From assembly GCA_963514005.1 (NCBI GenBank), contig OY740798.1, positions 51,398,001 to 51,462,000 on the forward strand: a stretch of 64,000 bases of DNA, read 5' to 3'. Both the position numbers and the translations under genes were made by a program. The notes below the pieces were generated by a model. The model had not been told where the DNA came from, searched no databases, and worked only from the letters and a program-made list of their open reading frames with translations. The stretch is from Raja brachyura (lineage: Eukaryota). Of the stretch, positions 17,201-63,229 are shown piece after piece; within the stretch, counting starts at the first letter, position 1, and the number at the start of each line of letters is the position of its first letter.

Positions 17201-20200
17201 TCTGAACTAGCAATGTTGTTAATTCCAGAAAAGATTTATAAGAAGGTGTCAGTTCAGACCATACCCAGGCGGTGAAACAGGCTTTGATTTATATGGGAGT
17301 GGATACGAATTAAATCACTCCACCAGGTCTGCTACAACATCAGTAGCGAGGGTTATTTACATTCCGCTGGATTACATCCTAGCAGCTGCAGGACGGTCGA
17401 ACGAGCGAACCTTCCAAACACTTATAATAACCCATTGTCAGACCAGGGTTTTTTTACCAACTCTATTTTATGTTCAGTTGTATAGTCCCTCTCGGATAAG
17501 AGTGGTTACTATTATGATTATTTATTCATTATGAATGTTTCCCTCAGACTGTCAATGAAGCAGCTGTGGTTGTGTAGACTCGTTTCTCACAGCATGAAAT
17601 CGCAGAGCTTTGAAATCTTCACGGAATCACTCACGTGACTCCGAAGTAAAATAGTAAGATTAAATGAGAACTTACCAGTTTGAAGTTTGATCTTTATTTT
17701 ATGAGGAGTTACGTTGGTGATTACATGCCCTCCACTCCCAACCCTCATATCACAAAGATCATCTGGTAGTTCTAGGTTTATAATGTCACTTCAATTACTG
17801 TTTTCTGTGATTTCACACTGTTGCTTTGAAGATTGACAAGCATGCACAATGGCGGGGTTCTTCACGTGAACACCAACGTAACTCCTCATAAAATAAAGAT
17901 CAAACTTCAAACTGGTAAGCTCGTTTAATCTTACTACTCTGTCTTATTTCACAATTTAAATCATAGTCACACTTGTGACATTTCAATAACATAAAACACA
18001 TGCTTTCTTCTCATAAGCATGTAGGTACATCACAACAAAACACATTACTCCATGACATACTCGCTGTACCTCTCCGGCGGTCTGACGGCTCTTCCTGCCC
18101 ATGTCTTTGTGATGGTGTTTCGTTCAAAAGTGTCTTCTTTTCAGTCTGTACATTCTGTGCTTCACTTCTAGTTTCTTCTCTTGTGTCACCATGTTTTTGT
18201 TTAGATTTCTCTGTGTTATGAGATTCACGAGTTGCATATTTTTCTGGTGATGCATGTTGTGTTGGTATTTTCTGTGTCAGCTGATGTTGCAAAGGTTTCT
18301 CAGTCTTCTCCGCATCTGGTGGTTTCTCTGGAGTTATGTGTGGGGGTAGTTCTCCGGTCTTCTTCAGATCCACTCGATTATGTCGGATTAGAAGTCCTGA
18401 CTCTGTCTCGACTTCGTATGATCACTCATCCAGTCATTTCTGAACTGTTGCTCTCTGCCATCCGGTATCTCCTAGTTTATAGGGTTTGAGTCTTACAACA
18501 TCACCTTCTTCCAGGATTGGCAGATCGTTGGCATATCGGTTGTAGGTTTTTGACTGTTTTCCTTGCAAATCCTTCATCTTTTTCCTCTTCAGTGAGTATC
18601 TCTGCCCACGTGGTTTGAGCAGGTTTGATGTAGTTGGAAGTGTCGTTCTTGTTCTCCTTCCATGTAGTCTTTGTTCAGGACTACTGTTCACTCCCTCAAG
18701 TTCAAACATATCGGTTCCCACTTTCTCCCATGGGCGATCTGGGAGGTCATGGGGCATCAGAGTTTCTTTCTGATTCTGTTGTTCCTACGTCCTGCAGGCT
18801 TCACAGTTTGAAATTAACTGTTTCACATCAGAGTGTTAAAGAAGGAACTGCAGATGCTGGAGAATCGAGGGTTACACAAAAAGCTGGAGAAACTCAGCGG
18901 GTGCAGCAGCATCTAAGGAGCGAAGGAGATAGGCGACGTTTCGGGTCGAGACCCTTCTTCAGACTGGTCAGGGATCAGGGAAACGAGAGATATAAACAGT
19001 GATATGGAGAGATAAAGCAAGAACAATGAGTGAAAGATATGCAAAAAAGTATTGGTGATAAGGGAAGCAAGCCATTGTAAGCTGTTTCTGGTGTGAAAAT
19101 GAGAAGCTAGTGCAACTTGGGGGGGGGGGGGGAGATGGAGAAGGAATGTCAGGGCCCGAGGGCTGAGGGAGAGGTGGGGGGGGGGGGGGGGGAAGGGAGC
19201 AGTCTGGGTTAACAGAATTGAGAAAATTCAATGTTTAAGCCCAGAGGATGCAAACTCCCCAAGCGGAATATGAGATGTTGTTCCTCAAACTTGCGGTGTT
19301 GTTCACTCTGGCCATGGAGGAGGCCCAGGACCGAGAGGTCGGATACGGAGTGGGAGGGGGAGTTGAAGTGCTGAGCCACCGGGAGGTCGGGTTGGTTATT
19401 GCGGACCGAGCGGAGGTGTTCGGCGAAACGATCGCCTAGCCTCCGCTTGGTCTCACCAATGTAGATTAGCTGGCATCTGGAGCAACGGATGCAGTAGACG
19501 AGGTTGGAGGAGGTGCAGGTGAACCTCTGTCGGACTTGGAATGACTGCTTGGGTCCCTGAAAGGAGTGGATGGGGGAGGTGAAGGGACAAGTGTAGCATC
19601 TCTTGCGGTTGCAAGGGAAAGTGCCCGGGGAAGGAGTGGAGCGGGAGGGAAGGGAAGAATTGACGAGGGAGTTGCGGAGGGAGCGGTCTTTGCGGAAGGC
19701 AGACAGGGGGGGAGATGGGAAGATGTGGCGAGTGGAGGGGTCACGTTGGAGGTGGCGAAACTGGCGGAGGACTATCTGTTGTATGCGCTGGCTGGTGGGG
19801 TGAAAGGTGAGGACCAGGGGGACTCGGCCCTTGTTGTGAGTGGGGGAATGGGGAGAGAGGGCAGTGTTGCGGGGTATGGAGGAGACCCTGGTGCGAGCCT
19901 CATCGATAGTGGGGGAGGGGAAACCCCGTTCTCTGAAGAACGAGGACATTTGCGATGACCTGGTGTGGAACAAGTCATCCTGGGAGCAGATGCGGCGTAG
20001 TCGGAGGAATTGGGAATAGGGGATGGAGTCCTTACAGGAAGCAGGGTCGGAGGAAGAGTAGTCCAGGTAGCTGTGGGAGTCAGTTGGTTTGTAGTGGATG
20101 TCAGTCAGGAGTGTGTCACCTGCAATAGAGATGGTGAGGTCAAGGAATGGTAGGGAAATGTCGGAAATGGTCCAAGTGTATTTGAGTGCCGGATGGAAGT

Positions 20201-23200
20201 TGGTGGTGAAATGGATAAAGTCAGTCAGTTCTGCGTGGGTGCAGGAGGTGACACCAAAGCAGTCGTCAATGTAACGGAGGTAAAGGTCGGGGGTGGGGCC
20301 CTGGTACGCCGAGAACAAAGATTGTTCGACGTACCCGACAAAGAGGCAGGCGTAGCTAGGGCCCATGCGTGTGCCCATAGCTACGCCTTGTGTTTGGAGG
20401 AAATGGGAGGAGTCAAAAGAGAAGTTGTTTAGGGTAAGGACCAACTCCGCTAGGCGGAGGAGGGTGTCAGTGGATGGGTATGGGTTGCTCCTCTGGTCGA
20501 GGAAGTACCGGAGGGCTTTGAGACCATCCTGGTGGGGGATGCAGGTGTATAGTGACTGGACGTCCATGGTGAAGATGAGAGGATGGGGGCCTGGACAACG
20601 GAATGTGCGGAGCCGACGGAGAGTGTCTGAGGTGTCTTGAACATAGGTGGGGAGGGATTTAACAAAGGGGGATAGGATGGAGTCAAGGTATGTGGAAATG
20701 TGTTCGGTGGGGCACGAACAGGCAGAGACAATGGGTCTGCCGGGGCAGTCGGGTTTGTGGATTTTGGGGAGAAGGTAAAATCGGGCTGTGCGGGGCTGTG
20801 AAACGATGAGGTTGGAGGCTCGGGGGGGTAGGGAGCCGGAGTTAATGAAGTCAGTTATGGTGCTCGAGATGGTGGCCTGGTGCTCGTCAGTGGGGTCATG
20901 GTCCAGGGGTAAGTAGGAGGAGGTGTCCGAGAGTTGGCGCGTGGCCTCTGCTTTGTAGAGATCGACGCGCCAGACTACCACGGCACCTCCCTTGTCGGCG
21001 GGTTTGATAACCCAGTCTGGGTTGTTGCGGAGTGAGTCGGTGGCAGTACGTTCGGAGGGGGAGAGATTGGAGTGAGACAGGGGAGTGGAGAAGTCGAGGC
21101 GGTTGATGTCCCGACGGCAGTTTTGTATAAATAGTTCTAAAGCTGGAGGGCCACGAGGGGGGGTCCACGAGGAGGGGGTACGTGGGAGACAGGAAAAGGG
21201 ATCATCAGTGGGGGGCGAGGACTTGTTCCCGTGGAAAAACGCTGTGAGGCGGAGGCGACGGTAGAAAAGCTCCAAGTCGTGGTGGGCGCGGAACTCATTG
21301 AGGTGGGGACGGAGGGGGACAAAGGTAAGACCTCTGCTGAGGACCGACCTTTCGGTGTCGGAGAGGGGGAGGTCCGGGGGAATGGTGAACACATGGCAGG
21401 GATGGGGGTTGTGGCTGGAGGAAGGCAGGTGAGTGGACTGAGGACGGGGTGTTGTGTGATGGGGGGGTGGAGGGTGGTCAGGGGGTGGGGGGGTATGTGG
21501 GCTGTGGTGTGGGTGGGAAAGAGCAGGGGTTACATGGTAGGAGGGGAATGGGGAAGACCCAGTGGAATAGCCACTGAGGTCACCGGGGCTGGGGAGACGG
21601 GCACTAGGACCCAGTTCCGTTAACAACAGAGTGGTGGGAGGAGTGAGCAACGTGGAGGCTTCAGGCCCGCTGCACAGTCCAGTCTGTAGGTGAGGCGACG
21701 GCTGCGGGCTGCTGGACGGCGGTGGAGTGTCGCGGGTCGGCGGGCCCGAAGGTAGGAGTCCGCAGGCAGTGGAGTCGGTGTCGGCGGGCGATGCGTGGGT
21801 GGTCCTGGTGGGCGAGTGGTCGGTGGGGCAGCAAGGTTCAGCCCGCCCGGTGAGGCGGCGAGATGAGTGGGGTGCGGTGCGGCGGCCATGTTCGGAGGGC
21901 CCCGGTCCGGCGGCGATGCAAGGTGAGACGGGTGCGGCTGTGATCTTTGGCGGGCCCAGTACAGCGGCGATGCTGGATGGGCCCGGTGCGGCAATGAGGG
22001 TAGGTGGTCCTGGGGGGCAGCGAGGTTCGGCGGTCGCGTTGTGCTGGAGATCAGCGGTGGAATCGGGAAGGGTGAGATAAACAAAGTTACCGGGTAGGCA
22101 GCGAGGCTGGGCGTCATCGGTAGGCAGGTGGGGGTCGGCGGCAGCATCGGCATGGAGGTCGGTGAAGGCGGCGTCCCGGTGAGTCCTGGAGGCGCTACTT
22201 GTGGCCAAGATGGCGTCGGGGGACTCAGGCCAGCGACTCGGGCCAGAGTTGGGGCCCGGGGCCTGCGGGCGGTGGAGTCGGGGATTGTCGGTGGCTGGAA
22301 CGGCCTGGAGGCGGGCTAACTTCACACCAGAGTTCATTCCGGGCCAGAAAATGCATTCTCTAGCACGTCTGTGGGTTCCTTCCACTCCTAGGTGAGAGGT
22401 GTGGAGTGTGTCCTTCATATCTTTGTGTAGAGTGACAGGGATTACAACTCTCTCTGCACACTCAACTCATCTCTGACGTTGAAGTATGGTTGTGCTGCCT
22501 CTGGGACTTCTGCCCTGTGTTCTGGCCATCCATTTTGGATTACTCTCTTAACTGTTTGTATTGTTTCGTCTTCACTGATATGAGCTTGGATGCGTTTGAC
22601 CTTGTCCTCATCCGTGCTCAAGGACTCAACTACGTTGACATCAGTGAATCTGGTTGAACCTGTGGTGTCAGGGAGGTATGCTCGGCAGACCATATCTGCT
22701 AGATGCATGTCTTCTCTGTTTACCCATTTGATCTCGATGTCATAGTGTAGCATCCTCGTCATCATGCTCTGGAGACGTCTTGGTGCTCTATGCAGAGGCT
22801 TTTTAACGATGACTTCCAATGGCTTGTGGTCACTCTCCACAATCACTCTCTGTCCGTAGGTGTACTGATGGAAGCGCTCAAGGGCAAACACTATTGCTAG
22901 TGCCTCCTTCTCAATGTGAGCACGTCTCTGCTCGGTTGGCGTCAATGCTCGACTCACATAGGGCAGTGGTTGTCCTTTCTGCATAAGTGTTGCACCTAGA
23001 CCTGCCTTGCTTGCATCACATTGCATGGTCAGCTGTTCGTCTGGTGTGTAGTACGCCAGGATAGGTGCCGTTGTCAACAGCTCCTTGATCTTTGACATCG
23101 CCATGTCATGTTGTGATGACCATTCCCACTCTGCTTCCTTGTGGGTCAATCTCCTCAAAGGCTCGAATGTGTCCGACAACCTTGGCAGGAATCTTGCCAA

Positions 23201-26200
23201 GTAGTTTCCACTGCCTTGTAATCTTTGGATTTCTGTTGGATTGGTTGGGTTGGGCATCTCTAGGATAGCTTGGATCTTCTTCAGATCCGGTTTCAAGCCA
23301 CGATCTGTAACTACATGTCCTTGAAATGTGATACACGTAGTTTTCACTACCGACTTCTTCTGGTTCAGCTTGATGCCTCTGTCTCTGCATCGCTGAAGAA
23401 GATCTTGCAGTCTTGCATCGTGATTCCCTTCTGCATCTTCTCTGGTCTCCCCTACTCCGAATAAGATGATGTCAACTGCAACACATTCCACTCCCTTTAA
23501 TCCTTCTCGTGCTAGTTGCAGCTTCTTCTGGAAGATCTGTGCACTTACTTTCAGTCCAAATGGCAACCTCTTCCAGTGATATCTCCCAACAGGTGTGTTC
23601 ATGATTGTTAGGAAACTGCTCTCCTCATCTAGTTCACTGTGGAGGTATCCTGACTTCAGATTGAATTTGGAGAAAATCTTTGCCTTGGACAACTCAGGGA
23701 GTACATCCTCTATGACTGGTAGTCTGTGGATCTCCCTTTTCAGGACTTTGTTCAGGGGTCTAGGATCTATGCAGAACCTCAACTCTGTGCTGTCCTTTTT
23801 CTCCGTAATGACCAGCCTGCTACACCACTCAGTTGGTTCCTCGACTTTAGTCAAGATGTCCTGCTCGACCAGCATCATGAGACCATTCATGACCTTCTCT
23901 TTCATGGCTACAGGTACCGGCTTTGCAGAACACTGTGATGGGGTCACATCCTCCGTCCTAGTTCCCAACTTGACCTTGCCAGGCAGTCTCCCAGGTCTTT
24001 AGTCGTCAAAGACATCTTTGTATTTCTTGATAAATGAGCCGGCCTCGCTAACAGCATTCAGGCTCTTGAAGTTCTCGTAGTGAACCGCGATGAGTTTCAT
24101 CTGTTGTGCAGCTTTGCCGCTCAGGAGCGGTGTGAGCCAGCCTTCCTCTACCACTATGAAGTGAACCCGGTACTTCTTGTTGTTCGGCTCGTTCCGGAGT
24201 ACAACTTTCGTCCTATCTTGCGCCAGCAGGTTGGATCCGTTGTACATCTTTCAGACCGTTTTCTATCGTCTAATGTCCTCTTTGTTGGGTACACGATCCT
24301 TGGGAATCACATTAACACTGGCACCAGAGTCAACCTGAAATTTGATGGCTGCTGTGCCGACCTGCATCTCAGCAAATAGGCCTGAAGTGGAATTGTTTCC
24401 AGCTGCATTGATCTCAATGCAACTCACAGACCCTGTGTCGGAAGTGGACGTTGAGTCAGATGTCTCTACGGCCTTGTGCAGACCCCGTTTCTGCGTGCTC
24501 TCCTTTCTCTGCTTGCTGCAGCAGGTGAAGTGGTTTTGTCGTCCGCATCTGTTGCAGTCCTTCCCATACACTGGGCATTCCTCCTTCCTACGCTTGTGCA
24601 TCCTTGCACAAATTTTGCACTTGACTAGTCCCTGATTCTTCCTCTGCGAAGGAAAATCAACCATCTTTCCCCTCGGTTTGAATCGTTCCACCTTGTGTAT
24701 TGTCGGCTCTTCGCCGATGTCCTGCATTCTTCCCGCTGTTACCTCCGAGGATCTACATATGTCCCTGCAGTGTCAGATTCCTCTTCTGAAGGAGTGTCTT
24801 CCTTGTTGACTGGTCCTCAACACCAATGATGATGCAATCTCGAATAAGGCTTTCTCTCAGCCAATCACAGAAGTTGCATGTTTTAGCAAGCTCCTTCAGC
24901 TCTGCAACACACGATTCATTGCTTTCCCCTGATTTCTGGTCTCGTTTATTGAAAATGAATCTTTTATATGTTTCATTCGTCTCTCCTATGATGATGGTGG
25001 ACATCTTGTCGATGGTGACTTTCACATCCGTCTCATCTGCTACTGATTCGAACGTCAGGGTATTGTAGATTTGCAGTATTTCCGGCCAACAGAATGCAGG
25101 AATATGCTTTTTTGATACTATTTCTCTTTATTATCCAGTTCTGTTATCACTGCATAACTTTCATACATATGTCTGCTTACAAAATAAGTAAACTAGCACA
25201 TAATATACAGAGAAAGATGGCTGCACACACACTCGTGTTGTGATCAAAAACAGGAATGATTTATTTCCAAGTCAAGGGTCACTGACTGACTTACTGAGCA
25301 TTTGCGAGAATGAGTCCAGCTCATACGCATAAATTACATGGATATTGTCACAAAATCCCTCCAAACCTGTCGAACAGTTTCTTAAATGTTGTGATAGTCC
25401 CCATCTTCACTACCTCCTCTGGCAGCTTGTTCCATACACCCACCACCCTCTGTGTAAAAAAATTATCCCTCAGATCTTTTCCTTTTCACCTTAAACCTAT
25501 CTCCTCTGGTTCTCGATTCATCTAATCTGGGCAAGAGACTCTGTGCATCTACCCGATCTATTCCACTCATGATCCTATACACCCCTGTAAGATCACCCAT
25601 CATCCTCCTGCAGTCCAAGGAATAGAGTCCCAGAGCACTCAACCTCTCCATGTAGCTCACACCCTCTAGTGTTCCACACTCTATGACTCTATGACTGTGA
25701 CTATATGTGGGGCAGGTTTTATGCACAGAGAGTGGTGGGTGGTGGGTGACAGGAACGCGTTTCCCGGGGTGGTGGTGGAGGCAGATATGATAATGGCATT
25801 TATGAGGCTTTTGGCTAAATGCACAGATATGCTGGGAATAGAGGGATATGGGTTATGTGCAATTGGATAAGTGATGGTCTTGGCATCCAAATCTGAGGAA
25901 AGACATTCTTGCCATAGAGGGGGTACAGAGAAGATTCACCAGACTGATTCCTGGGATGTCAGGACAGGGGGGATCTTATAGAAACGTACAAAATTCTTAA
26001 GGGGTTGGACAAGCTAGACGCTGGAAGATTGTTCCCGATGTTGGGGGAGTCCAGAACAAGGGGTCACAGTCTAAGGATAAGGGGGAATTCCTTTAGGACC
26101 GAGATGAGGAAAACATTCTTTACACAGAGAGTGGTGAGTCTTTGGAATTCTCTGCCACAGAAGGTAGTTGAGGCCAGTTCATTGGCTATATTTAAGAGGG

Positions 26201-29200
26201 CGTTAGATGTGGCACTTATGGCGAAAGGGATCAGGGGGTATGGAGAGAAGGCAGGTACGGGATACTGAGTTGGATGATCAGCCATGATCATATTGAATGG
26301 CGGTGCAGGCTTGAAGGGCCGAATGGCCTACTCCTGCACCTATTTTTCTATGTTTCTATGTTCAGCCCAGCATTGGGCTGAAGGGCCTGTTCCTGTGCTG
26401 TACGTTTCTGTGTTCCATATATCAGCAAAAGCATTACCTTCCTGTTTTCCAACACTTTGATTTTCCAGATACTCTTTTTCCATTTCACCCTCATCGGTAC
26501 TTCTTGTTGTGACATCTGAATCCGGCGCTGTATTAAAACACAGCAAGGTGACAACAACTGAACTTGAATGCGTGGAGTTCCAAACAGAAAATTCCACTTA
26601 TTTGAGCAATGGCCTGAATATTGTGTATAATATTTGCAGGGAATAACTAAATATAAATCATGTACAGTCTGCAGGCAATGATTGGACATCAAATGCCACT
26701 GAAAGGCCAACAATACTCTGGATGCTTTGAGAAATGACTTACCTTCACTTGCTCCTGCATTTTGGGAATCCTGCCTCTCTATCTCCTGTTCACCTTCATC
26801 ACAACTCCGTGTGGCAGCATCTGACTTGGGCACTGTATTTAAACAAAAGAAAGTCTCTCAGATGTGATAATGGCAACACAGACTGAGACAAGGTATGTGA
26901 GAAGCTGGATCACACCTCAAGGAACTTTATTATTCTTCCCCACAGTGAAGTCTTCATCTGCCGAAGGATCTGTATCTCACTCCTGCAGAAAATACCTTCA
27001 ACTCTTCTTCACTTTAAACCTCATTTGTCTTTAGACTTTAGGGACACGGCCCTTCGGCCCACCGAGTCCGCGACAACCAGTGATCACCCCGTACACTAGC
27101 GCTATCCTACACATTAATGACTATTTACAATTTTACCAAATGCAAATTAGGAGTGGCACGATGGAGCAGTGGACAAGTTGTTGCCTTACAGCACCAGTGA
27201 CCCGGGATCTATTCTGACTATGGACGCTGTCTGTATGGAGTTTGTACGTTCTCCCCGTGACCGCATTGGTTTTCTCCGGATGCTCCGGTTTGCTAACGCG
27301 CTCCAAAGACGTACAGGTTTGTAGGTTAATTGGCTTTGGTACAAATTGATCCTGATGTGTGGGATAGTGCTACGTATGGGGATCACTGGTCGGCACGGAC
27401 TGGGGAAGCTTGGAATACAAGAGATATTGTGGTTCCGGCCAGAGAAAAGGAGGAGTGGACCAGGAAGAAGAGCTGGGATCACGTGAATCCCTGGAGGAGC
27501 ATTGGGATGTAGGAGTTACTTCAGAAGGAAATTGGAACGACTAAGAGAAAGCATGAGTTCGCTTTGGATGAGAAGATTAAGGAGAATGCAACAAGTTTGT
27601 ATAAGTATATGAAGGGGAATAGTAAGATTGAACGAGAACTTACCAGTTCGAAGGTTGATCTTTATTTTATGAGGAGTCGAAGTGAGGGATTTCGTGAAGA
27701 GCCCGCCGGCGCGCATACTCGACATACTTCAAAGTAGCGGTGTGGAATCACAGAAACCAACAAAGAAATGACTTCGCATAGTAAGATTGAAGTGACTAAG
27801 ATTACCAGATGAAGGTGATTGAGGGTTGGGCGAGGAGGGCACGAAATCCCTCACTTCGACTCCTCATAAAATAAAGATCAACCTTCGAACTGGTAAGTTC
27901 TCGTTCAATCTTACTATTTCATTTCGGAGTCACGTGAGTGACTTCGTGAAGACTTCAAAGCTTCTGTGATTACACGCCCTGGACCACGTCCATGCTGACA
28001 CACCACTACCAGGGATGGATGGGAGGAACAAACTTGCTCAATAGTTCATACTGCAAAACAAGAGCAGAGTTATTAATAACAAATCAAAACCCCTCATGCG
28101 GGGACATCTCCACGTTCGTGACCTGCATTCAGCACGGCTTCTGCAAACTGTAGAGGAGCAGCAACAGGCTTGTTATAAAAACGCTGGAACACAGCTTCAT
28201 TAGCCCATCCTGCTGTGGCGAGAATTTGGTCCATGGGCACCTCCATGACCCTCGCCGTTGACGTCGATGCAGCCCTGTTGGAAAGAGACTTGAACACATT
28301 AGTGTCGATACCTGACTTACCCAAAACGACTGGAAGCCACATGGATATCGTCTGGACTGTCACTCGATGATGAGGTCTCTTATGAGTGACAAGCAGGTAT
28401 CTCTCCATTCCTCTGATGCGTGCCGTCACCTTGACATAGTGGCGGATATGTGAGGCTACACATAGCCTAGCATCTGCGGGGTATGCTGGGAACTTCAGCT
28501 GCAGCCCTGTGCACCCAGGTCCATGCTGCTTTAGTAGCTCGTCAATGAAAAAGACTACTTCTGTGGGGGTAGACGTCATTCTGTCGACACGAAGTTTGTG
28601 TAGTGTCTGTACCCTCTGAGCTGAAGTCAGCGCTAGTAACATCACCAGCTTCATGGTGCGTTGGTCCAGTTGGAGCCCTTCCATGGGTGACCACGTCCTG
28701 AGCAGGGTTAATACGTCCCTGACATCCCAGGTGATATTATAGCGTGGTGTAGGCGGATTCATATTGAATATACCCCGCATGAGTCTGGACACTAGCCTGT
28801 TGGATCCTACCTCCAAACTGAGGTAGAATGATAGCGCACTTCTGGCGCTGTTGATGGCACTGTAACTCAAGTGTTCATCATGGTGCAACCCCGCGAGGAA
28901 TTCCAGGACGTCGGTTGTTGTCACGTCATCGTACGTGATGCGAGAGCGGCTGCAGTAGGCTTCCCACTTCTTAATATGCGAGCAGTATCTTTGCCTTGTA
29001 GACTCTCGACACGACGCCCCGGTGGTATCCATGGTCCGAGCCGAGAGGCCGTATTGGACTAACGGCCTGTTCAGAACCTGCAAGCCAACAAATTTAAATA
29101 GCCATGGCAGGGATGCGGCTCCCCTGAGACAGGGTGAGTAACCAATTGTGGGCAACCCTTCAAAAGGACCCAAGGTTCGTTGAGCATGTCAAAGACCACC

Positions 29201-32200
29201 GGATACCAAGGCTGTGTGGGCCAGTCGGGTATAATAAGGATGCCCTTGGCAGCATCTGCCTGAATCTTTCCCAATACCCGACTGATGAGGCAAAATGGGG
29301 GGAAGGCATAGAAAAACCACTTCCCCCAGTCCAGCGAGAATGCATCTAGCGCTATTGCCCCAGGATCTGGTTCCCATGAAACGTAGGTTGGTACCTGATG
29401 GTTCCACCGTGACGCAAAGAGGTCAATGTCCGGTTTACCAAATTTGGCTGTGACTTTAGAAAAGATCTCAGGATGCAACATCCATTCAATATTGTCATTA
29501 AATTTGCGTGACCTGGTGTCCGCCACCGTATTAAGCTCACCTGGCAAATAGGTAGCTGAAATCCAAATGTCTCTTTGAACACACCAGAGCCAAATTGAGT
29601 TTGCCAATTTGTCACACGAAACTGGCCTGGTACCACCCATATGGTTTAAATATGCTACTGCTGTGGTGTTGTCTATTTGGAGACGGACATGTGCTCCAAC
29701 AAGCTTAGAACAATACGCACGAAGTCCGTAGAATGCTGCCAGCAACTCCAAATAGTTAATCCCTTGAGTTAACAACATCGTTGATTCAAGGGTGTCCCAT
29801 CTGCCACCACAACTAGAGCAATTATTCGTGGATCCCCAACCATTGGAGCTTGCATCAGTTTGCAAATATACCACCGGATTAGCCTCCCTAATAGGCTTGA
29901 ATGAGTTGCTAATGTGACACACCCACCATTGCAACTCATTTATCGCTTCGGGCGGCAGCTGCATGGACCGATCATAATGACCAGCGTTCTGTTTTAACGC
30001 AGCAATTTTAGCTCTTTGCAAATTCTGATAATGCAAAGGTCCATATCGCACTGCCGAAAACAAAGCTACCAGCTTCCCAATTATTGTAGCTAAGTGCCGA
30101 ATCGATGGTATATTGGTGCGGATTAAATCTTGACACACCTGGGTAACCTCCTCAATCTTGTTAATTGGAATGGTAACCCTCATGCTTATAGAGTTCACCG
30201 TGAACCCTAGGTAATTAATCACCTGGGCAGGGTAGAACTTTGATTTCTCTGGATGGACAATAAACCCCAATTGTTGAAATATATTGACAGCAGCTGCAAC
30301 ACCCTGTTCAGCCAATTCCAGGGTGTGGCCCACAATTAAGACATCATCTAAATAGGCCATACTATATGGTGTCGTTGTCTCAAATAAGCCATAATTGGCT
30401 TCACTAATTTAGTGAACAATCTAGGGCTGTGGTGAGCCCATTAGGCAAAGCCTTGTACTGCCAGAGTTGCCCCATCCAGATGAATTTTAAAACCTTCTGT
30501 CACATTTCTGGACGGATACGGAATAATATGCGTCTTTTAAATCGATGCATGCCATAAAGCAACCACGAGAAATCAATGATTTGGTTGTTTCAACGTATCC
30601 ATTTTAAAATGAGAATATGTTACAAAAGCATTCAAACGGGTTAGATCAATAATGACACGACAACTTCCATCCTTCTTAGGTCTGGTGAATATGTTCGAAA
30701 CAAATTCAACTGGCTCATGCACCACTCTCTTAATCACTCCTTTGCTCAAGACTTAACAATTCCTTATAGCCGGCTGCCTGTTCTGCAGCAGATAATTTTA
30801 AATGTTCGAGCGGGCATGTGCTGGGATGGAGGAATGTCGCCATTAATAAACTCAATTTTATGCCCCTGAATATTCTGCAACACATACTCGTCACCAGTGA
30901 AATTACCTCATGCACCCAAAAAACCACCGAAGGTGACCACCAACATGTGAAGTTAAACAGAGAGAAAAGAGAGAACCAGACCCCCTCACCTCCGTGGTTA
31001 CCGGCGGTCCTTGACACGCGTGTGTGGACGTGGAGGTGCTGGGTTGGCTTGAGGGCGCGGCGTCTTCGTTTTCCACCAGGGTCTCTGCCGACCCTGTCCT
31101 AAAAAAGACCCCTGGTGCTGTGTCTGATGTTGCTGTCATTGTGGAGCTTGAGGGTGGGTCCTCGTCGAGGTACTGGCAGACCCTCGTGATCGAATGTATG
31201 GAGACTTTGAGCCTGACGGTGTGGGGGCACTCTGAGGGCGCATGATCCCCACCGTTTTGGCTTGCTCGTCAAGCTCTTTGACTCTCTTCGAGAGGTCCTT
31301 CCCAAAGAGCTGACGGGGCGGGGGCGGCGGCGGTGGTTTGCACACTCCTGCAAACTTTGGATTGAGCGCTGGGCGGATGCTGGTTTTGCGAAACCCGTTA
31401 ATTTCGTGCTGGGTCGCGCACAGGAGGGCCAGGGCATCTCCCTGGTCCAAATTCAATTCGTCCCCCTCCACCGACCGCACAAAGGCGGTAATACCGGCCG
31501 TGAGGAGCTTCAGGATCCGCTGCAGTTTTACCTCCTGTTGACGGATAGCCGCACTGATGTCGCCCCATATCGGCGTATTGACCACAGGCACGTTGAGGGA
31601 GTTGCAATTGGATGGAGCCTTGTGACGGCTCTTTGCCTGGATGAGGACTTCTTCCTGCTGCTCCAGGCTGATAGTAGATGTTTGTGAAGACGCCCTGTGC
31701 CTGTTGCTGCCCTGCTGGTGTTGACGTTGAAGCAGGAGCTCCAGCAGCCGCTCCATACGGTCAATACGCCCTTCACCCTGAACACTCAGGTGGTCGGAGT
31801 CCTCCGGCTCTGAAAAGAAAACCGGGCTCCTGTCATCGGCCCGCACCTCGTCGAGGCCCTGCCGGTGCCGGTAGTTGTCGCTAACAGCCGCCGAGGCGAA
31901 CTGCGAGATTCCTGCGCGGGCGTGTTCAACCGCCTCCGTTTAGCGGGAGCTGAAGCCGCTGCCACTAAGGGCACTTGCAGCGAGGTGTCGGCACCAGCCG
32001 AAGCATGGCTGCCTGGGGCCCGCGCAGTCTTGCCGGCTGCCCACATCGTGGACGTTGCCGACGCATGGTCTCGCCCACCCATCCATGGGGGGCTCGGCGA
32101 CCGTGACGAGACCCGACTCGACCGACCCGTCCCGGCGTCGAGAGTCGGGGTGTGCCGGCTGGACCTCACAGCCGCCCCGGGTCTCTCCCTGGAACCTGAC

Positions 32201-35200
32201 CGCTCCTCCGTGTCAGGCAATGCCTTAGCCCTGGTAGGGTTAGGCTTCTGGGCTCCTGCCCTTCCCCTACTCGGAGGGCTGAGTGGAACGGGCCGTGCAG
32301 CCGCACGCACCCTGCTCGAGGTCGCCAGCGAGCTCGCTGACGACCTGACTGCCATGGCAGGGTCCCCCTGCTCTGGCGGCACACCACACTCCTCCTCGTC
32401 GAACTCCTCCGAGCTGTGGTGTGCTGGCGGATCTGGACCTGTGAACACAGGGCTTACCCACATCTCCGCCTGAGTCCCGGCCTGCGATGCAGGTACTGCC
32501 GATGGTGAAGGCCCCGGAACTGTTGACCAGCGAACTCGTCCTGACGTCCTCCGGCCCTTGGAACTCCCATCCATGTCCTTGCTGCAAGACAAAACCAACA
32601 ACAAGGACCACCAACTAAAGGTAGAATACTTACCTCCGTGGCCCCTTCTGAAGGGCTGGTGAGGAGCGCGCTCCACCGCCAGCCGTCGCAGCAACGCGGT
32701 ACGACGATATGTCGAGCATGCGCGCCGGCGGGCTCTTCACGAAGTCACTCACGTGACTCCGAAATGAAATAGAGAATTGGATTAGTATAGGATGTGGAAT
32801 TGGCCTGAAGTTCATAAGTTCTTGGAGCAGAATTAGGCCATTCAGCCCATCAGAAGCAGAGGGTGACAGTGAAAGATACAAGGAACTGTAGATGCTGGTT
32901 TACAAAAACATGGACACAAAGTGTTGGAGTAAGTGGTTCAAGTAGCATCTGTGGAAAACATGGATAGGTCATCTTTTGAGTTGGGACCTTTTTTGGACTA
33001 GAGACCCTGTTTAGTGGTGTGCCTCCCATTGCTGTTTGTTATCTATATCAATGATTTAGATGAGAATGTACAAGGCATTATTAGATATTACCTGGGGTAA
33101 CTTTGAGGACTGTAGTGTGCACTTCAGACCAAGTGGCGTCTGGAGTGTTTGATTTGTGTTCAATATTGATCTGAGCGGCATCGTCCGTGGATAAATTAGG
33201 CTGCACCTTAATACAGCAGTGAATGTGTGAAAGACCCGTATCGGTAGTTTGTAATTCAGGCTGATCAGCAGAGAAGGATATACAGGTATCTTGATTGCAT
33301 GAATGAGGTATAGTTTTCAGAGGTTGTGTCACCCTTTTTGGACCCTGCAATTGTTCTGCTGACAACTGCCAGTGAAATAATTTAATTGTTTTCCGCTCTC
33401 CCCTCTTCAGTGATATAACAATATCCATTGGCAGCAGAGTAGTCATGGTCACATCCCAGCTCACATCAGCAGTTTCACCATGTACGACTTCATACTGATT
33501 CTTCATACCACTAATTGCAGGAGCTGAAAGATAGACACAAAAAAAATCAAATGCAATGTAAACGTAATGATACATTTTACTCCATTATTGTCCAGCACAT
33601 TATTCCTTGCATATAATTTACAAACTTCATTAATTTAAACTTAGTTTAGTTTAGAGATACAGCACGGGAACAGTTCTTCGACCCACTGAGTCCACGCCCA
33701 CCAGTAACCACTCCATACACTAGTCCTATCCTAAACACTGGGGGCATTTACAGAAGCCAGCACGTAGCCCAATGAGTCCACACTGACCACCGATCACCCA
33801 GTAGTTCTGTGTTGCCCAACTTTCTCATCGACTCCCTCCACACTAGGGGCAATTCCAGTTTTTCCAGAGGGCCAATTTACCGACAAACCTGCATGTCTTA
33901 GGGATGTGTGAGGAAAACCATAGAAAACGGCGTCAAGGGCTACGGGGAGAAAGCAAGAGATTGGGGTTGAGAGGGAAACATAGAAACATAGAACATAGAA
34001 ACATAGAAAATAGGTGCAGGAGTAGGCCATTCGGCCCTTCGAGCCTGCACCGCCATTCAATGTGATCATGGCTGATCATCCAACTCAGTATCCCTTACCT
34101 GCCTTCTCTCCATACCCCCTGATCCCTTTAGCCACAAGTGCCACATCTAACGCCCTCTTAAATATAGCCAATGAACTGGCCTCAACTACCTTCTGTGGCA
34201 GAGAATTCCAGAGACTCACCACTCTCTGTGTAAAGATAGAATTGAATGGCGGAGTAAACTTGAAGTGTATAGTGTATAGTGCAAATGTATACAAATGTAT
34301 AGTGTCTGCAGGTAGACAAAACTCCAGGGCCTGATCAGATATATCCATGGACATTGTGGGAAACCAGACAGGAAATTGTGGGAGCCCTGGTTGAAATTTA
34401 CGAGTCTTCTTTAAATACAGGAGAGGTGCCGGAAGAGGGGAGGGTGCCTCTATTCAAGAAGGGCTGCAGGGATAATGCTGGGATCTGTAGGACAGTGGGC
34501 TTAACAGTGGGCTTAGTTGGAAAGTTACTAGATAGTATTCTGAGGGATAGGATATACAGACATTTAGACAGACAAGGGCTTATTTGGGATAGTCAGTATG
34601 GTTTTGTACGTGGGAGATTGTGTCCCTCCGTTGAAGGAACGATCTTGACTCCCGTAGCCGGCGGTATTCGGGCCCTCCGCATCGAGGCGATCAGCTCTCG
34701 CATCGAGGGGATTGTCAGCTTCCCTGTGCTGGGCGATCGAACCTTGCGTCGGGGCTGGACGAATCTTCCGCGACGTTGGAGCCCCCGACTCAGCCTCTCC
34801 CGAGACTGCGAGCCCTGGATGGTAAGTCCACAGGCAAGGGATCCGCTCCGTTGTTAAGTCCGCGCCCCGCGGTGGGGCTCACGACAGTCCGAGGAGGCCT
34901 CCAGTTCCATCGATGGTAGGCCGCAGAGCCCGGAGAATGTGATCCGAAAATTGATCACATCTACGGGAAGGTAAGAACTTGAAAAAAAGTTTCCCCAGAT
35001 CCCACCCCCCCCCCCCCCCCCCCACATAAAACAAACCTAAGAACATTAAAACAAAACTTTTAACAAAAAAAAATAACAAAAGGAAAGAAAAAACGAACAG
35101 ACTGCCGGCAGGGCTGCCATCTCCCCGGCGCCCCTGGACCTCAGTGCACCATTCAACAAGGTTCCGCGTTAATTGCAAATGCTCTGGAAGGTTAGATCGC

Positions 35201-41200: not shown

Positions 41201-44200
41201 CACACCAGAATAAACTACAAACCAACTGACTCCCACAGCTACCTGGACTACTCTTCCTCCCACCCTGCTTCCTGTAAGGACACCATCCCCTATTCCCAAT
41301 TCCTCCGTCTACGCCGCATCTGCTCCCAGGATGACGTGTTCCACACCAGAATATTAACACTACATCTCCATCTGGTTTGGCAACAGCTCTGCCCAGGACA
41401 GGAAGGCTCTGCAGAGAGTAGTGTGTTCTGCCGAACACACCAGGGGAACTACACCCCCCCCCCCCCCCCCCCCACCCCTTCAGGACTTGTACACCAGGAG
41501 GTGCAGATCCAGAGCCAGCAGGATCATGAAGGACCCCTACTACCCCAGCAACGGACTGTTCCAGCAGCTGCGGTCAGGCAAGCGCCTCCGCTGTCACACT
41601 GCGAAAACAGAGAGGATGAGACGGAGTTTCTTCCCACAGGCCATTAGGACTGTAAACTCTGATCTCACCAGGGCGTAAATGTTGCGTCTACTTTTTTAAA
41701 TGTAAATACTGGTTATATTCTGTTCTTTTCTGTTGTTTTGCACAATCTGCAAGCATTGCCACTCTCATTTCACTGGACATCTTCACTTGATGTTTCAGTA
41801 AAAGCTTTACCTTCCCATTTTCCTGCACTTTGATTTTCCAGATTCATTGCTTCCCATTCACCCTCATTGGGACTAATGTAGCGGAGACATGTTGGCCGGT
41901 GTGGGCAAGGTGGGCCGAAGGGCCTGTTTCCAAGTTGTATCACTGTGTGGCTCTTTGATTATGAATGGCCAAGTTCTGCACCTATAACCTATGAACATGG
42001 AGAAAACCCGCACAGTCACAGAGAGAACGTGCAAACTCCATACAGACAGCAGCCGTGGTTTTGTGCTAATGTTTCTAAACTTGGTTTAAAACTTCATCTA
42101 ATTGTGTGTGTTGTGGGAAGAAAAGGAATCTTGTATTGGATATAATTAATCACTATAATCAATTACCTGGTGTAGTTTGTGAGCCCGTCTTGGCGATAAG
42201 TGGTGTACGGTTTGGGTCTTCAACGTCTGTTGTATATACCTGTCCTGAACAACATAAACAAGACAATTAGGCAGGAAACAAGCTGACCAGGTGCCAGTTT
42301 AAAAAGTATAAAAATACACTGATCAATTCCAGCTTTCTGGACAATATATCTTTCTCTGGAACGCCAGAGGTCGAGGGGAGATCTGATGGAAGTATATCAA
42401 ATGATGAGAGGCATAGACGGGATAGACAGTCAGAATTTTCACTTTTTTGATGATTGCTATAAGATGGAAAAGCGTTTACCTTTACATTTCTTCTTCCAGG
42501 TATAAAATGCTACGCACACAACACAGAGAACTATGCCGATGCCACAGATGCATCCAATAATCAGCCCAGTTTTTCCATGTCCTGTTAAAACAGGCAGAGA
42601 TCGATGAAAACGTGAATAATAAATATACTGGGCTATTTACAACATTCATCAGAGACACTAGAATCTGCAGATGCTGGAATCTTGATTAAAACACAAAGTG
42701 CTGGGGAAACTCAGTGGGTCAGGCAGCATCTGTGGAGGAAATGAACAGACGATGTTTAGGGTCAGGAACATCACCTCTCCATTCCTTCCACAGATGCTGC
42801 CTGACCCGTTGAGTTCCTCCAGCACTTTGATTTATGTACAATATTCCACAGAATGTATCACTAACTTATTCTACTTATCAGATTGGTTTATTCCCTGATG
42901 GAATTGGTGTAGTTCTGGTCACCCCATAACAGGAAGGATGTGGAGGCTTTGCAAAGGGTGCAGAAGAGTGCTTGCTTGGATTAGGGGTATCAGCTACACT
43001 GAGAGATTGGACAGATTTGGATTGTTTTCTTTGGAATGACGGAAGTGGATGGGAGAACTGATGGAAGTATATACGATTATGAGAGACATAGATAAGGTAG
43101 ACAGTCAGGACATTTACCCAGGGTGTAATAGTGAGAATGTGGAGAGCATAGTTTTAATGTGAGAAGAGTAAAGTTTAAACGAGATGTACAGGGCAAGTTT
43201 TTAAACAGAGAGTGGATGTCGAGACTGTACTGGTAGTATGGTGGAGGCAGATACGATAGTGGCGTTTGGGAAGTTTATAAATAGGCACATGGATATGCAG
43301 GGAATGGAGGGACATGGACCACACACAGGCAGAGGAGATTTGTTTATCTTGGCATCATGTACAACACTGTGGGCCGAAGGGCCTGCTCCTGTGCTGTACT
43401 GTTCTAGGTTCTGTACTTAACTGGTACCTATTGTGTTTACTTCCCAGGTGTCAAACAGCCGTAGCATTTAAAATTCCAAGGATTATACATATCATCTCCA
43501 TGATGCAGATTATAATTAAAGCGTAATTTGATTTCTGGGTGTTGTCAATTTAAAAAAATATAAAATTGCACAGACTTTGAATAAAAGAAGCAATAGATTG
43601 ACTTAAATGTTCAGGAATATATTAATAATCTTTGATTTGATGAATTGTATTGAATTGAATTGATTGAACAGACCCTAAATCCCACCAAGACCACGCTGAC
43701 ATTGATTACGTGTTCACACTAGTTCTATGTGATCCCACATTCTCATCTTCTCCCTACAAACTAGGGGCAATTTACAGAGGGCCAATCAACCTACAATCCT
43801 GCACGTTCTTGTGATGCTGGTGGAAACTGGAGCACCCGGAGGAAACCCACGAGGTCACAGGGAGCACGGGCAAACTCCACACAGACGGCACCCGTGGTCA
43901 GGATTGAACCGCAGTCTCTGGAGCCATGAGGCAGAAACTCTACTTGATGCAATTCTGTGCTGCCCCAGACCCTGGGAATGATCAGAGGTCCTTTATGTAC
44001 ATGTTTCTAGACATGTGGCAATCTGCAAAGTTGTATTATCTAGATTAATATTCTAGAACCTGACAACTTGTCAGACATAACCAGACAAGCATTGAACCGG
44101 TGGTGATTCAACTGTGGAACACTGCTCATTGCCCTGAATCCATTTTGCCACTGAGCCACCCACCGACTCCATTAGTGAAGCGGTTATCTCCAGAGCTGAG

Positions 44201-47200
44201 AGTCCTGATGCACTTCACATCTGACCCCTCACTTTATTCAAGGACGATGTACATCAGCGCTCATTACAAAAGGCTGACACCTCTAATTATTTAATTCTTA
44301 AATGTGTATTGAATCATGAGGGGAATAGATGGGGTGGATGCAGAGACTTTTACCCCCTCAGCACAGGGGGAATCAAGAACCAGGGGACATAGGTGAGTGG
44401 GGGAAAATTTAATAGGAAGCTGAGGGGAAACACTCACACTCAGAGGGTGGTGGGTAAATGGAACAAGCTGCCAGAGGAGGGAGTTGGGGCTGGTACTATA
44501 ACAGCATTTAAAAGATTTTTGTACAGTACATGGATAGGAAACGTTTAGAGGGATACGGGCCAAATGCTTAGATAAGTTCAAATTCATATGATTGGAGCAG
44601 AATTAGGCCATTCAGCCCATCAAGTTTACTCCACCTTTCAATTGTGGCTGATCTATCTTTCCCACCCAATCCCAATCTCCTACCTTCTCCCCATAACCCT
44701 GACACCCGCACTAATCAAGACTCTGACAATCTGTCTTAAAAATGCCCAATGACTTGGCCTCCACAGCTGTCCGTGGCAATGAATTCCACAGATTCACCAT
44801 CCTCTGACTACAGAAATTCCTCCGCATCTCCTGTCTAAAGGTGCGTCCTTTATTCTGAGGCTGTGGCCTCTGGTCCTAGATCTCCCACTGTGTTCCACTC
44901 ACCTGGCACGGTGAGAGAATGTCCTATTATGAAACCATTCAGGAACGTTTGATGTCTCACTACGCATCTGTATTCATCACCATTATCGTTCAATGTCGGG
45001 TGAATCTTCAGCTCACTCTCAGCATTGAAAGTGCGATCACCATTGGCAGTGATTTGAGTTCTATAGTTATTCGTGGAAACATTTCTTCTTCCAGTTATCT
45101 TCACCCAGGTGATGTTTATCGGTCGAGGATAAAATCCACTGACTTTGCATGTCATAGACACTTCTGGACCTTTCTCATTTGTGATGGACTGTGTCGATAA
45201 ACTAACGTTTGGTCGAGCTGCATTAAAAAATGTACATTTAAATATTAGAGGAAGTGACTGCAGGTGCTGGAGATAGAAAACAAAAGCAGACAACACTGGA
45301 AGCACTAAGCAGGTCCAAAAACATTGGCAGGGTATGGAACAGGGTCATTTCTTCAGGCTGGTGTCTCTTCAATAGAGTTAGGAATGCTAGAACCAATAGC
45401 ATCTGAAGACATTAATATGATAAAGTAGGCACATGGTGTGCTTGCATTCATTGGTTGGGGCATTGAGTATAAGAGTCAGGAAGTCATGATTCAGCTTCAT
45501 AGGACTTTGTTTCACCTGCATTTAGACTGTTGTGGGCAGTTCTGTTTCAGTTCAATTTAGTTTATTGTCACATGTAATGAGGTACATAAAATGCTTTGGT
45601 TGCGTGCTAACCAGTGAGTGGAAAGACGATACATGATTACAACCAAACCATTCACAGTGTACAGATGCATGATAAGGGACTTACGCTTAGTGCAAAATAA
45701 AGCCAGTAAAGTCCGATTAAAGATAGTCCAAAGGTCACGAATGAAGTAGAGAGTAGTTCAGGACTGCCCTCTACTTGTGATAGGATGGTTCTGCTGCCTG
45801 ATAATAGCTGGCAAGAAACTGTCCCTGAATCTGGAGGTGTGCGTTTTCACACTTCTGGTCACCCCATTACAGGAAGGGTCTGGAGGTTTTGGAAAGGATG
45901 CAGAGGAGGTTTACCAGAATGGATGGATTAGAGGGCATTAGCTACAGGGAGAGTTTGGACAGACTTGGATTGTTTTCTCTGGAATGCCAGAGGTTGTAGA
46001 AAGACCTGATTGAAGTATATCAAATTATGAGAGGCGCAGGTGGGGAAGACAGTCAGAACCATTTTCCCAGGATGAAAATATCAAATACTAGAAGCCGCTG
46101 CTTTAAGGTGAGAGGAGCAAAGTTTAAAGGAGATGTGTGGGGCAAGTTTTGTTACACAGAGGGTGGTAGATGCCTGGAATGCACTTTAACAGGGGTGGTG
46201 GTGGAGGCAGATACAATAGTGACATTTAGGAGACTTTATGATAGGCACATCCAAAAACATCCCCTACAACTCCCACCAACTTCTACAGATACACTGTGGG
46301 AAGCATTTTATCGCCTTGTTTGGGAACAGCTGGAACCAAGACTGCACGATATTGCAGCGAATTGTGGACACAACTCAGACCATCAAACAAACCAACCTCC
46401 CTTCCATTGACTCCATTTATATCACATTGCCTCGGCAAGGCCAGCAGCATAATCAAGGACGAGTCGCACCCTGGCCACTCCCTCTTCTCCCCTCTCCCAT
46501 CAGACAAAGGATATAGAAGTGTGAAAACACACACCTCCAGATTCAGGGACAGTTTCTTCCCAGCTGTTATCAGGCAACTGAACCATCCTATCATTAACTA
46601 GAGAACAGTGCTGAACTACTATCTACCTCTTTGATGATCCACGGACTATCTTTGATTGGACTTCACTGGCTTTATCTTGCACTGAACGTTATTCTCTGAT
46701 CATGTATCTGTTGTTGTTGTTTGTCCTTTGTAGTCGAAGAAGACCATGACTTCAGTGTTTTTGTTTGTGGGTCTGGAGGTGACTGGTGAGTCCGATCCGG
46801 GCCCAGAAGGCTCGCCCGCATATGGGACACAGCTGGTGGGTGCCACAGTAGAAGCCAAAGTGGCCCGAGCCCCGTGCGCGGCGCGTTCCCTTTGTGCTTC
46901 TGCGGCGCGCCCCTTCCCAGCTGCACGCGTCCCGTGGTGATCCTGCTTCACCCAGTTGTACACGATGAATGGCTCAATTGTAATTGTCTTTCCACTGATT
47001 GGTTAGCATACAACAAAAACAACAACATGCACATCTTGATATGACAATAAACTAAATCTGCTGCACTGATAAACACATGGATATGCAGGGAATGGAGGGA
47101 TATGGATTACACATAAGTGCAGGTAGATAAGAGAGGGTCTTGGCATTATGTTAAAAACAGACATTGTGGGCTGAATAGCTTGCACCTGCGCTGTTCAGTT

Positions 47201-56529: not shown

Positions 56530-57110
56530 CCCACATGGGAACCCACACCACGGACTGGGAACACGTGAACACACATCACGGACCGGGAACATGGGAACAC
56601 ACGCCACGGACTGGGAACACGGGAACACATGCCACGGACCAGGAACACGTGAACACGCATCACAGACCGGGACAATGGGAACACACGCCATGGACCGGGA
56701 ACATGGGAACACACGCCACGGACTGGGAACACGTGAACACGGATCACGGACTGGGAACATGGGAACACACGCCATGGACTGGGAACACATGCCACGGACC
56801 GGGAACACGTGAACACGCATCACAGACCGGGAACATGGGAACACACGCCACGGACCGGGAACATGGGAACACACGCCACGGACTGGGAACACGTGAACAC
56901 GGATCACGGACCGGGAACATGGGAACACGCCACGGACTGGGAACACGTGGACACACGCCACGGACCGGGAACACGTGAACACGCATCACGGACTGGGAAC
57001 ATGGGAACATACGCCATGGACTGGGAACACGGGAACACATGCCACGGACTAGGAACATGGACTGGGAACATGGGAATCCACACCATGGACTGGGGACACA
57101 GGAACATGTG
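56530..57110. repeat. ~28-30-bp minisatellite (CACGGACYGGGAACAYGGGAACACACGC and variants)
   Basis: Visible tandem array ending about 90 bp from the IgV exon acceptor. Confidence 0.9.
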
Positions 57111-63143: not shown

Positions 63144-63229
63144 CTTACAAAGGTCTTACAAAGGTGTATCAGATCCTGAGGGGAATAGATAGGATGAATG
63201 CACAGAGTCTTTTACCCAGAGTAGGGGAA

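Follow-up and report, generated by a model that had tools for sequence, protein, structure and literature searches.

A single exon at positions 33092–33523, on the minus strand of a 64,000-nucleotide stretch of DNA from the skate Raja brachyura (assembly GCA_963514005.1, contig OY740798.1, positions 51,398,001 to 51,462,000; the whole stretch is hereafter called the window), is predicted to encode an immunoglobulin (Ig)-like domain of 143 residues. The domain is termed IgX, a label given in this analysis as it bears no earlier name. The reading preferred here, to which a probability of roughly 0.6 is assigned, is that IgX derives from a C1-set domain and resides in the cytoplasmic tail of a B7-H6-like membrane protein, where it serves as a binding module, and that a soluble form of the same protein arises by skipping of the transmembrane (TM) exon.

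The exon runs from 33523 down to 33092, preceded by an AG acceptor and followed by a GT donor. The minus-strand sequence at the 3' splice side reads ...ctatctttcag followed by CTCCTGCA, the first exon bases being also given as CTCCTGCAATT, and the donor end reads ...ACCCCAG followed by gtaata, the last exon bases being also given as GTTACCCCAG. Two leading bases complete a codon, 143 full codons remain open and one extra base is left over at the end: the 432-nt exon is therefore of phase 1-1. Upstream of it on the same strand are the V, C1 and TM exons and the first cytoplasmic exon, all of which are likewise of phase 1-1, and the two junctions proposed for it, 42167 to 33523 and 33092 to 26832, are both in frame. 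A tblastn search of the 64-kb window with the exon product matched the exon alone and found no second copy, so the exon can be regarded as non-repetitive. Splice sites and frame agree with an earlier description made from the letters only (the sequence-only reading), which had proposed an open, non-repetitive, phase 1-1 exon of 432 nt downstream of the TM and first cytoplasmic exons. A chance open reading frame (ORF) or a transposon fragment was considered and is ruled out by the single copy in the window together with the strong homologues in annotated genes.

The descent of IgX was investigated with 24 non-redundant copies cut from homologous proteins and aligned. When compared by hhalign, the profile of these copies matches the C1 domain of the same family with a probability of 90.5% and an E-value of 1.4e-6 over 101 columns, an alignment that covers strand A to strand G and is broken by a single C–D gap of approximately 30 residues. 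The V domain of the family is matched with a probability of 2.7%. Three IgX sequences of Callorhinchus milii score above the curated cut-off of 21 bits for the Pfam C1-set (PF07654), namely P0007 (45.7 bits), P0012 (38.5) and P0024 (32.8). Elasmobranch copies, including that of the window, fall below the threshold; a Pfam scan of the window exon alone returned no match up to an E-value of 10 and a sequence search of the exon against the PDB returned none. Strand motifs common to IgX and the C1-set include L-x-C/W-x-V-x-G-F-x-P, G-T-F-x-V-x-S/C and x-V-x-H. Descent of IgX from a C1-set Ig domain is supported, whereas present-day membership of the Pfam family is not supported for the window exon. 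The parallel with the gene's own C1 domain, proposed in the sequence-only reading, is in agreement with both the hhalign result and the Callorhinchus scores.

IgX shares its ancestry with the C1-set domains of Ig, T-cell receptor (TCR), major histocompatibility complex (MHC) and beta-2-microglobulin. Unlike them, it has no disulfide between strands B and F, no tryptophan on strand C, an insertion of 30 residues between strands C and D and a location after the TM segment. The position of the B-strand cysteine is occupied by tryptophan in 20 of 22 non-redundant copies (W22 in the window) and that of the F-strand cysteine by isoleucine or valine (I120 in the window). Two Callorhinchus milii copies retain the B-strand cysteine (ELQCAVTGFTP), the F-strand cysteine is found in no copy, and the canonical B–F disulfide is missing in 24 of 24. 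The substitutions read earlier in the window copy, in which the B-strand cysteine is replaced by tryptophan and the C-strand tryptophan and F-strand cysteine are missing, thus hold. The residues invariant in the family (V24, I34, R40, L48, F49, W51, A85, P108 and S111) are all present in the window copy.

The fold of IgX was predicted by AlphaFold2 from an alignment of the exon product with 13 homologues. The model is all-beta, with ten strands and two short helices, a mean predicted local distance difference test (pLDDT) of 83.7 and a predicted template modelling score (pTM) of 0.76; only residues 71–80 are weak. Foldseek returned 393 matches in the PDB at E ≤ 1e-3, and all among the matches listed are Ig V-type domains with template modelling scores of 0.5–0.6, the best of those listed being V domains of TCR and antibodies, myelin P0 and PD-1. 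VIA-align, which is independent of Foldseek, was run against 48,161 representative chains and gave Z scores of 10.3–12.2 and a root mean square deviation (rmsd) of 2.5–3.0 over 101–122 residues. Its best match is myelin P0 (Z 12.2, rmsd 2.6, 116 residues), and virtually every one of the 50 highest-ranked chains is an Ig V-type domain. A protein language model search placed the nearest named clusters in the V-set. By predicted structure IgX is a two-sheet Greek-key beta-sandwich within the size range of Ig folds (∼100–140 residues), and its assignment as an Ig beta-sandwich is well supported by modelling, as the sequence-only reading had anticipated.

The modelled topology is not the seven-strand arrangement of C1 domains, which has neither C' nor C''. 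Extra strands at residues 46–53 and 63–70 stem from the insertion of ∼30 residues and, as the C–D insertion is modelled as C' and C'' strands, the structural neighbours are of V type. IgX would therefore be V-like in topology despite its C1 ancestry. C1 domains usually pair: a two-copy prediction of IgX self-association gave a score of 0.01 with no verdict, which is evidence neither way.

A phmmer search with the 143 residues against 1.84 billion representative sequences gave 17 matches at E ≤ 1e-3, 13 of them below 1e-10 and six below 1e-30. P0016 and P0017, the weakest two, are repetitive proteins with no relation to IgX. All genuine matches are cartilaginous-fish proteins, and nearly all are named 'uncharacterized'. 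The best one, at 9.4e-201, comes from Heterodontus francisci and contains seven tandem IgX copies. The homologue of Rhinoraja longicauda (XP_078271721, P0002) was found at 1.9e-72, with 78–79% identity in IgX, and that of Leucoraja erinacea is 93% identical over the last 30 residues. Proteins of Callorhinchus milii, with up to eight IgX copies, match at 1e-16 to 1e-29. The domain is present also in Scyliorhinus torazame, S. canicula, Stegostoma tigrinum, Heptranchias perlo, Hemitrygon akajei, Mobula birostris and M. hypostoma. Recognizable copies in Callorhinchus milii indicate that IgX has been kept across the deepest split within the cartilaginous fish. In a word-indexed homologue search the domain region of Rhinoraja matched only itself and Leucoraja P0015 matched only tail-only isoforms.

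Full-length models from seven species share one layout: a signal peptide, a V-set domain, a C1-set domain, one TM segment, basic residues and then IgX copies spaced by acidic repeats. The copy number ranges from one to eight per protein and IgX lies C-terminal to the TM segment wherever the latter is modelled; in no full-length model is there a hydrophobic segment C-terminal to the TM. In Callorhinchus milii IgX begins seven residues past the TM anchor (...FWKKWNQ followed by APPKITEI...; P0014 and P0026). An acidic tail exon comes after IgX in the gene models of Rhinoraja and Leucoraja. This layout agrees with the one proposed in the sequence-only reading, a V-C1-TM protein with a C1-derived domain in its tail. 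Judged by sequence, IgX appears to belong to a B7-H6-like family of type I membrane proteins confined to cartilaginous fish.

Two of the homologues present peculiarities of their own. In Heterodontus francisci (XP_067902347-52; P0001 and P0018–P0021) seven near-identical units of 167 residues, each an acidic linker plus IgX, are arranged in tandem, which looks like a very recent amplification of an exon pair, and the isoform models vary in the TM exon (X3) and in the N-terminal exons. In Rhinoraja P0002 an extra piece of 30 residues (294–323), equivalent to the last two IgX strands, is located between the first cytoplasmic and the acidic exons and represents a duplicate exon that has been truncated, or else an artefact of annotation; the matching site in the window has no AG acceptor.

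The ectodomain resembles that of B7-H6. Human B7-H6 (NCR3LG1) is a ligand of NKp30, and its tail is not an Ig domain, carrying instead a Gag-related segment with short signalling motifs. In searches of the PDB the V exon of the window matched human B7-H6 (9.4e-13), two-Ig CD276 (1.7e-8) and four-Ig CD276 (1.1e-17, summed over two stretches), and the C1 exon matched UrIg2, constant domains of Ig heavy chains and B7-H6, the last at 2.6e-12. For the ectodomain of the closest homologue, Rhinoraja P0002, the best solved-structure match is human B7-H6 (2.5e-23), with CD276 at 9.2e-14. One Callorhinchus milii member has been named 'natural cytotoxicity triggering receptor 3 ligand 1-like' by NCBI. 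The human and skate genes are alike in having an ectodomain of IgV plus C1-type IgC, one TM segment and a long cytoplasmic tail, the type I layout of B7-H6, with the signal peptide seen in the homologues only. Unlike its human counterpart, the skate tail encodes a C1-derived Ig domain and acidic repeats of 30 residues.

Eight family members have a mean pairwise identity of 47% in IgX, 44% in C1 and 55% in V. When the window is compared with the Rhinoraja model, conservation is much higher in the tail than in the ectodomain, with identities of 78–79% in IgX and 60–64% in the TM and first cytoplasmic exons, as against 41–46% in V and 29% in C1. As the V and C1 exons of the window are closest to a model of Scyliorhinus torazame (55–56%) and IgX is near Rhinoraja, the gene looks mosaic at the sequence level, a pattern suggestive either of a fast-evolving ectodomain or of exchange between paralogues through exon shuffling or gene conversion.

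Several features bear on the side of the membrane on which IgX resides. The signal peptide, the single TM segment and the positively charged stretch right after it would place IgX and the acidic repeats in the cytoplasm in the membrane isoform. The number of cysteines per IgX copy varies between two and six, is odd in 13 of 22 copies and involves variable positions; in V and C1 the count is exactly two in 15 of 16 cases. N-x-S/T sites occur at 0.67 per 100 residues in IgX, none of them conserved, compared with 1.92 in V and 2.43 in C1, where positions are conserved. The absent disulfide, the odd cysteine counts and the sparse sequons look like marks of a compartment that is reducing and free of glycosylation. 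That IgX is cytoplasmic in a membrane-bound form of the protein is moderately probable.

A number of observations, set out in this and the next paragraph, weigh against that reading. The Heterodontus isoform model X3 (P0020) skips exactly the TM exon, joining ...DTDPVE to GKTIPKEIEDD..., and because of this model part of the product may be secreted. The sequence-only reading had raised a secreted V-C1-Ig isoform lacking the TM as an alternative, and in the horn shark such a form exists as a model. A secreted splice form beside the membrane form is a real possibility. Moreover, an E-strand cysteine (C102) is kept in 23 of 24 copies and a second cysteine occupies one of two alternative columns, 16 of 24 copies having it in one and eight of 24 in a D-strand column approximately opposite in the D–E hairpin: the pair could form a disulfide other than the canonical one, in keeping with a domain exposed outside the cell. 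A more radical proposal builds on these data, namely that the main product is secreted, with the TM skipped and V, C1, IgX and the acidic repeats forming a soluble multi-Ig protein that might act, for instance, as a decoy or as an opsonin-like ligand and in which an extracellular IgX would be stabilized by a non-canonical disulfide involving the E-strand cysteine. Skipping would preserve the frame, since all exons are of phase 1, and every exon of the window is indeed 1-1. The proposal is unlikely and has at best a modest chance of being correct, as the TM is retained in most models, cysteine counts are odd in more than half of the copies, sequon density is about one-third of that of the ectodomain with no conserved site, and the canonical disulfide, nearly universal in secreted C1 domains, has gone throughout IgX. 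Many receptors have TM-skipping isoforms that carry their tails along although the tail has no extracellular role, which also counts against secretion as the purpose of the domain.

Further points against a functional cytoplasmic module concern the gene itself. All homologues are computational gene models. Neither a leader exon nor a terminal exon was found in the 64-kb window, and the gene may be incomplete. A contig of a close relative differs from the exon at nine positions in eight codons (five amino-acid-changing, two silent and one double-hit), too few to judge; short-range constraint on the exon appears weak, with a sample too small to call. Four public contig sets over 32300–34300 show no junctions or loose ends at the exon borders and yield no usable signal of expression, and no joint could appear in this comparison because the partners 42167 and 26832 lie beyond the covered stretch. 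Seven public runs were found for the exon, none of which is recorded as RNA. In run X1, guessed to be RNA, two short contigs (33135–33266 and 33240–33345) end inside the exon and bear no strand information; in public contigs the flanks of the exon are swamped by repeat copies. It is conceivable, if quite improbable, that the exon is a relic in a decaying paralogue of a transposon-saturated cluster, intact by recency rather than by use. The missing leader and terminal exons would fit such decay, as would the excess of amino-acid-changing over silent codons, the introns packed with retroelement ORFs, the neighbouring 90-nt tail exon at 41812–41874 that has no 5' half and cannot keep its phase, and the departures of the window copy from the family consensus, which amount to one residue missing in the KRKGEQE loop and an insertion of two residues. 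Decay is difficult to reconcile with nine listed exons that are all open with intact AG and GT sites, with the retention of all nine invariant family residues and with an IgX identity of 79% to the Rhinoraja model that exceeds the values for V and C1. It is very improbable that IgX and the acidic exons constitute an independent gene that has its own start, codes for a soluble protein of the cytosol and was wrongly joined to V-C1-TM by annotation. Models consisting only of IgX and acidic repeats do exist: the isoforms of Leucoraja LOC129705962, Scyliorhinus canicula P0005, Mobula hypostoma P0004 and Callorhinchus P0007 and P0012. Several of these tail-only models look truncated, as their sequence opens within IgX itself, in two cases with a methionine (MTIVTSVKRK... 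and MVIIIFLKRK...). Furthermore, the exon starts in phase 1 without an initiator of its own, the Callorhinchus milii IgX lies seven residues past the TM anchor within one model, and joined models recur in seven species.

The history and probable role of IgX may be envisaged as follows. A C1-set domain gained ∼30 residues between strands C and D and became, as modelled, a V-like sandwich of nine to ten strands. The B–F disulfide and the C-strand tryptophan were lost, with a tryptophan at the old position of the B-strand cysteine now filling the core. In the cytoplasmic tail of a ligand of the natural killer (NK)-receptor type, IgX would act as a folded module for protein binding, either tethering or clustering the ligand or coupling it to an intracellular partner. 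The copy number, between one and eight, would set the length or the valency of the tail, and splicing that omits the TM exon would release the same chain from the cell in soluble form.

Folded beta-sandwich modules behind the membrane are known in other type I proteins. Butyrophilins (BTN/BTNL, with the order IgV-IgC-TM-B30.2) are B7-related type I proteins with a folded cytoplasmic beta-sandwich. The B30.2 domain of BTN3A1 senses an intracellular ligand and alters what the ectodomain shows to a lymphocyte receptor, and in this way B30.2 lets butyrophilins report the intracellular state to gamma-delta T cells. In function, they offer the closest parallel to a B7-type ligand that has a folded module inside the cell. 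Unlike the butyrophilin module, IgX is not a B30.2/SPRY domain, has C1-set ancestry and often occurs in tandem; no Pfam match to SPRY or PRY was obtained for the exon or for eight full-length homologues. A structural precedent is offered by integrin beta-4, whose cytoplasmic fibronectin type III (FN3) repeats put a typically extracellular beta-sandwich to use within the cell, where the tandem array serves cytoskeletal linkers as a scaffold. Both cases feature tandem beta-sandwiches in the tail of a type I protein. Integrin beta-4 differs in that its repeats are FN3 rather than Ig C1, it belongs to another protein family and it has no immune-ligand ectodomain. By analogy with B30.2, IgX might be an intracellular sensor or coupling module, which would turn the B7-H6-like proteins of cartilaginous fish into inside-out signalling ligands. 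A C1-set domain would have moved to the cytosol early in jawed-vertebrate history to bind a stress, viral or cytoskeletal factor, and this partner would control the display of the V-C1 ectodomain to NKp30-like receptors. This extension is improbable.

The significance of a cytoplasmic IgX would lie in the nature of the domain. C1-set Ig domains are regarded as extracellular modules of adaptive immunity, found in Ig, TCR, MHC, beta-2-microglobulin, tapasin and B7-H6, and are not known inside the cell. A full-text literature search found no account of a B7-H6-like protein whose tail contains an Ig domain, an earlier mention outside the searched texts being possible. The proteins themselves are already in public databases as uncharacterized models: what appears new is the relocated Ig domain in a family of B7-H6-like ligands. 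In sharks, rays and chimaeras alike, a C1-derived domain that has lost its disulfide follows the membrane anchor, and it is amplified up to eight-fold; if the reading is true, this would be a rare case of a C1-type module reused inside the cell. The oldest known family of the NKp30-ligand type would gain a structured tail whose partners can be sought, and what B7-H6-like ligands do on their own cell would become directly testable. Should the secreted form be the true product, a new class of soluble multi-Ig proteins would be added to the repertoire of cartilaginous fish.

The remaining exons of the gene are all encoded on the minus strand, and each was searched on its own. The IgV exon (56107–56439) has phase 1-1 and 111 codons, and matches the Pfam V-set at 3.2e-9. 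The IgC1 exon (44903–45217) has the same phase, 105 codons and the canonical cysteine pair, and matches the Pfam C1-set at 5.1e-14; splice sites were read for both. The TM exon (42480–42581), also of phase 1-1 and read directly, encodes a hydrophobic helix and then the basic stop-transfer WKKKCK, and shares 60% identity with its counterpart in Rhinoraja P0002. The first cytoplasmic exon (42167–42244, 78 nt, phase 1-1) is 64% identical to residues 266–293 of the same protein. Two acidic tail exons of 90 nt, at 26743–26832 and 26438–26527, encode 30 residues each. A duplicate of the former is located at 8448–8537, with 93% amino acid identity, and a copy of the latter at 8143–8232. The pair of acidic exons, together with an intron of ∼215 nt, is thus present twice, 18 kb apart (26438–26832 and 8143–8537), and the repeat is a segmental duplication within the tail region of the gene.

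The remnant at 41812–41874 on the minus strand belongs to a further 90-nt acidic tail exon. Its GT donor is intact and its 5' half has been replaced by an unrelated sequence, probably a transposon; the exon is probably dead because the sole nearby AG gives the wrong phase. Long ORFs of retroelement type populate the introns, likewise on the minus strand, at 19212–24772, 28097–30408, 52266–54901, 2–1361 and 62214–63155. They include a 1085-residue ORF with pol-like and gag-like ORFs upstream, reverse transcriptase ORFs of the long interspersed nuclear element (LINE) type and recombinase-like ORFs of the DIRS/Crypton type, labels that rest on visual inspection of the translations. A tandem array at 56533–57057, a short way upstream of the V exon in either an intron or the 5' region, is built from a 28/84-nt unit, with ∼19 copies of 28 nt and 77–85% matches. 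Two additional arrays are found towards the other end of the window: a G-rich minisatellite at 6102–6929, with a unit of 19–29 nt and ∼28–42 copies, and a regular 84-nt repeat at 10497–10979, with 5.8 copies and 97% matches.

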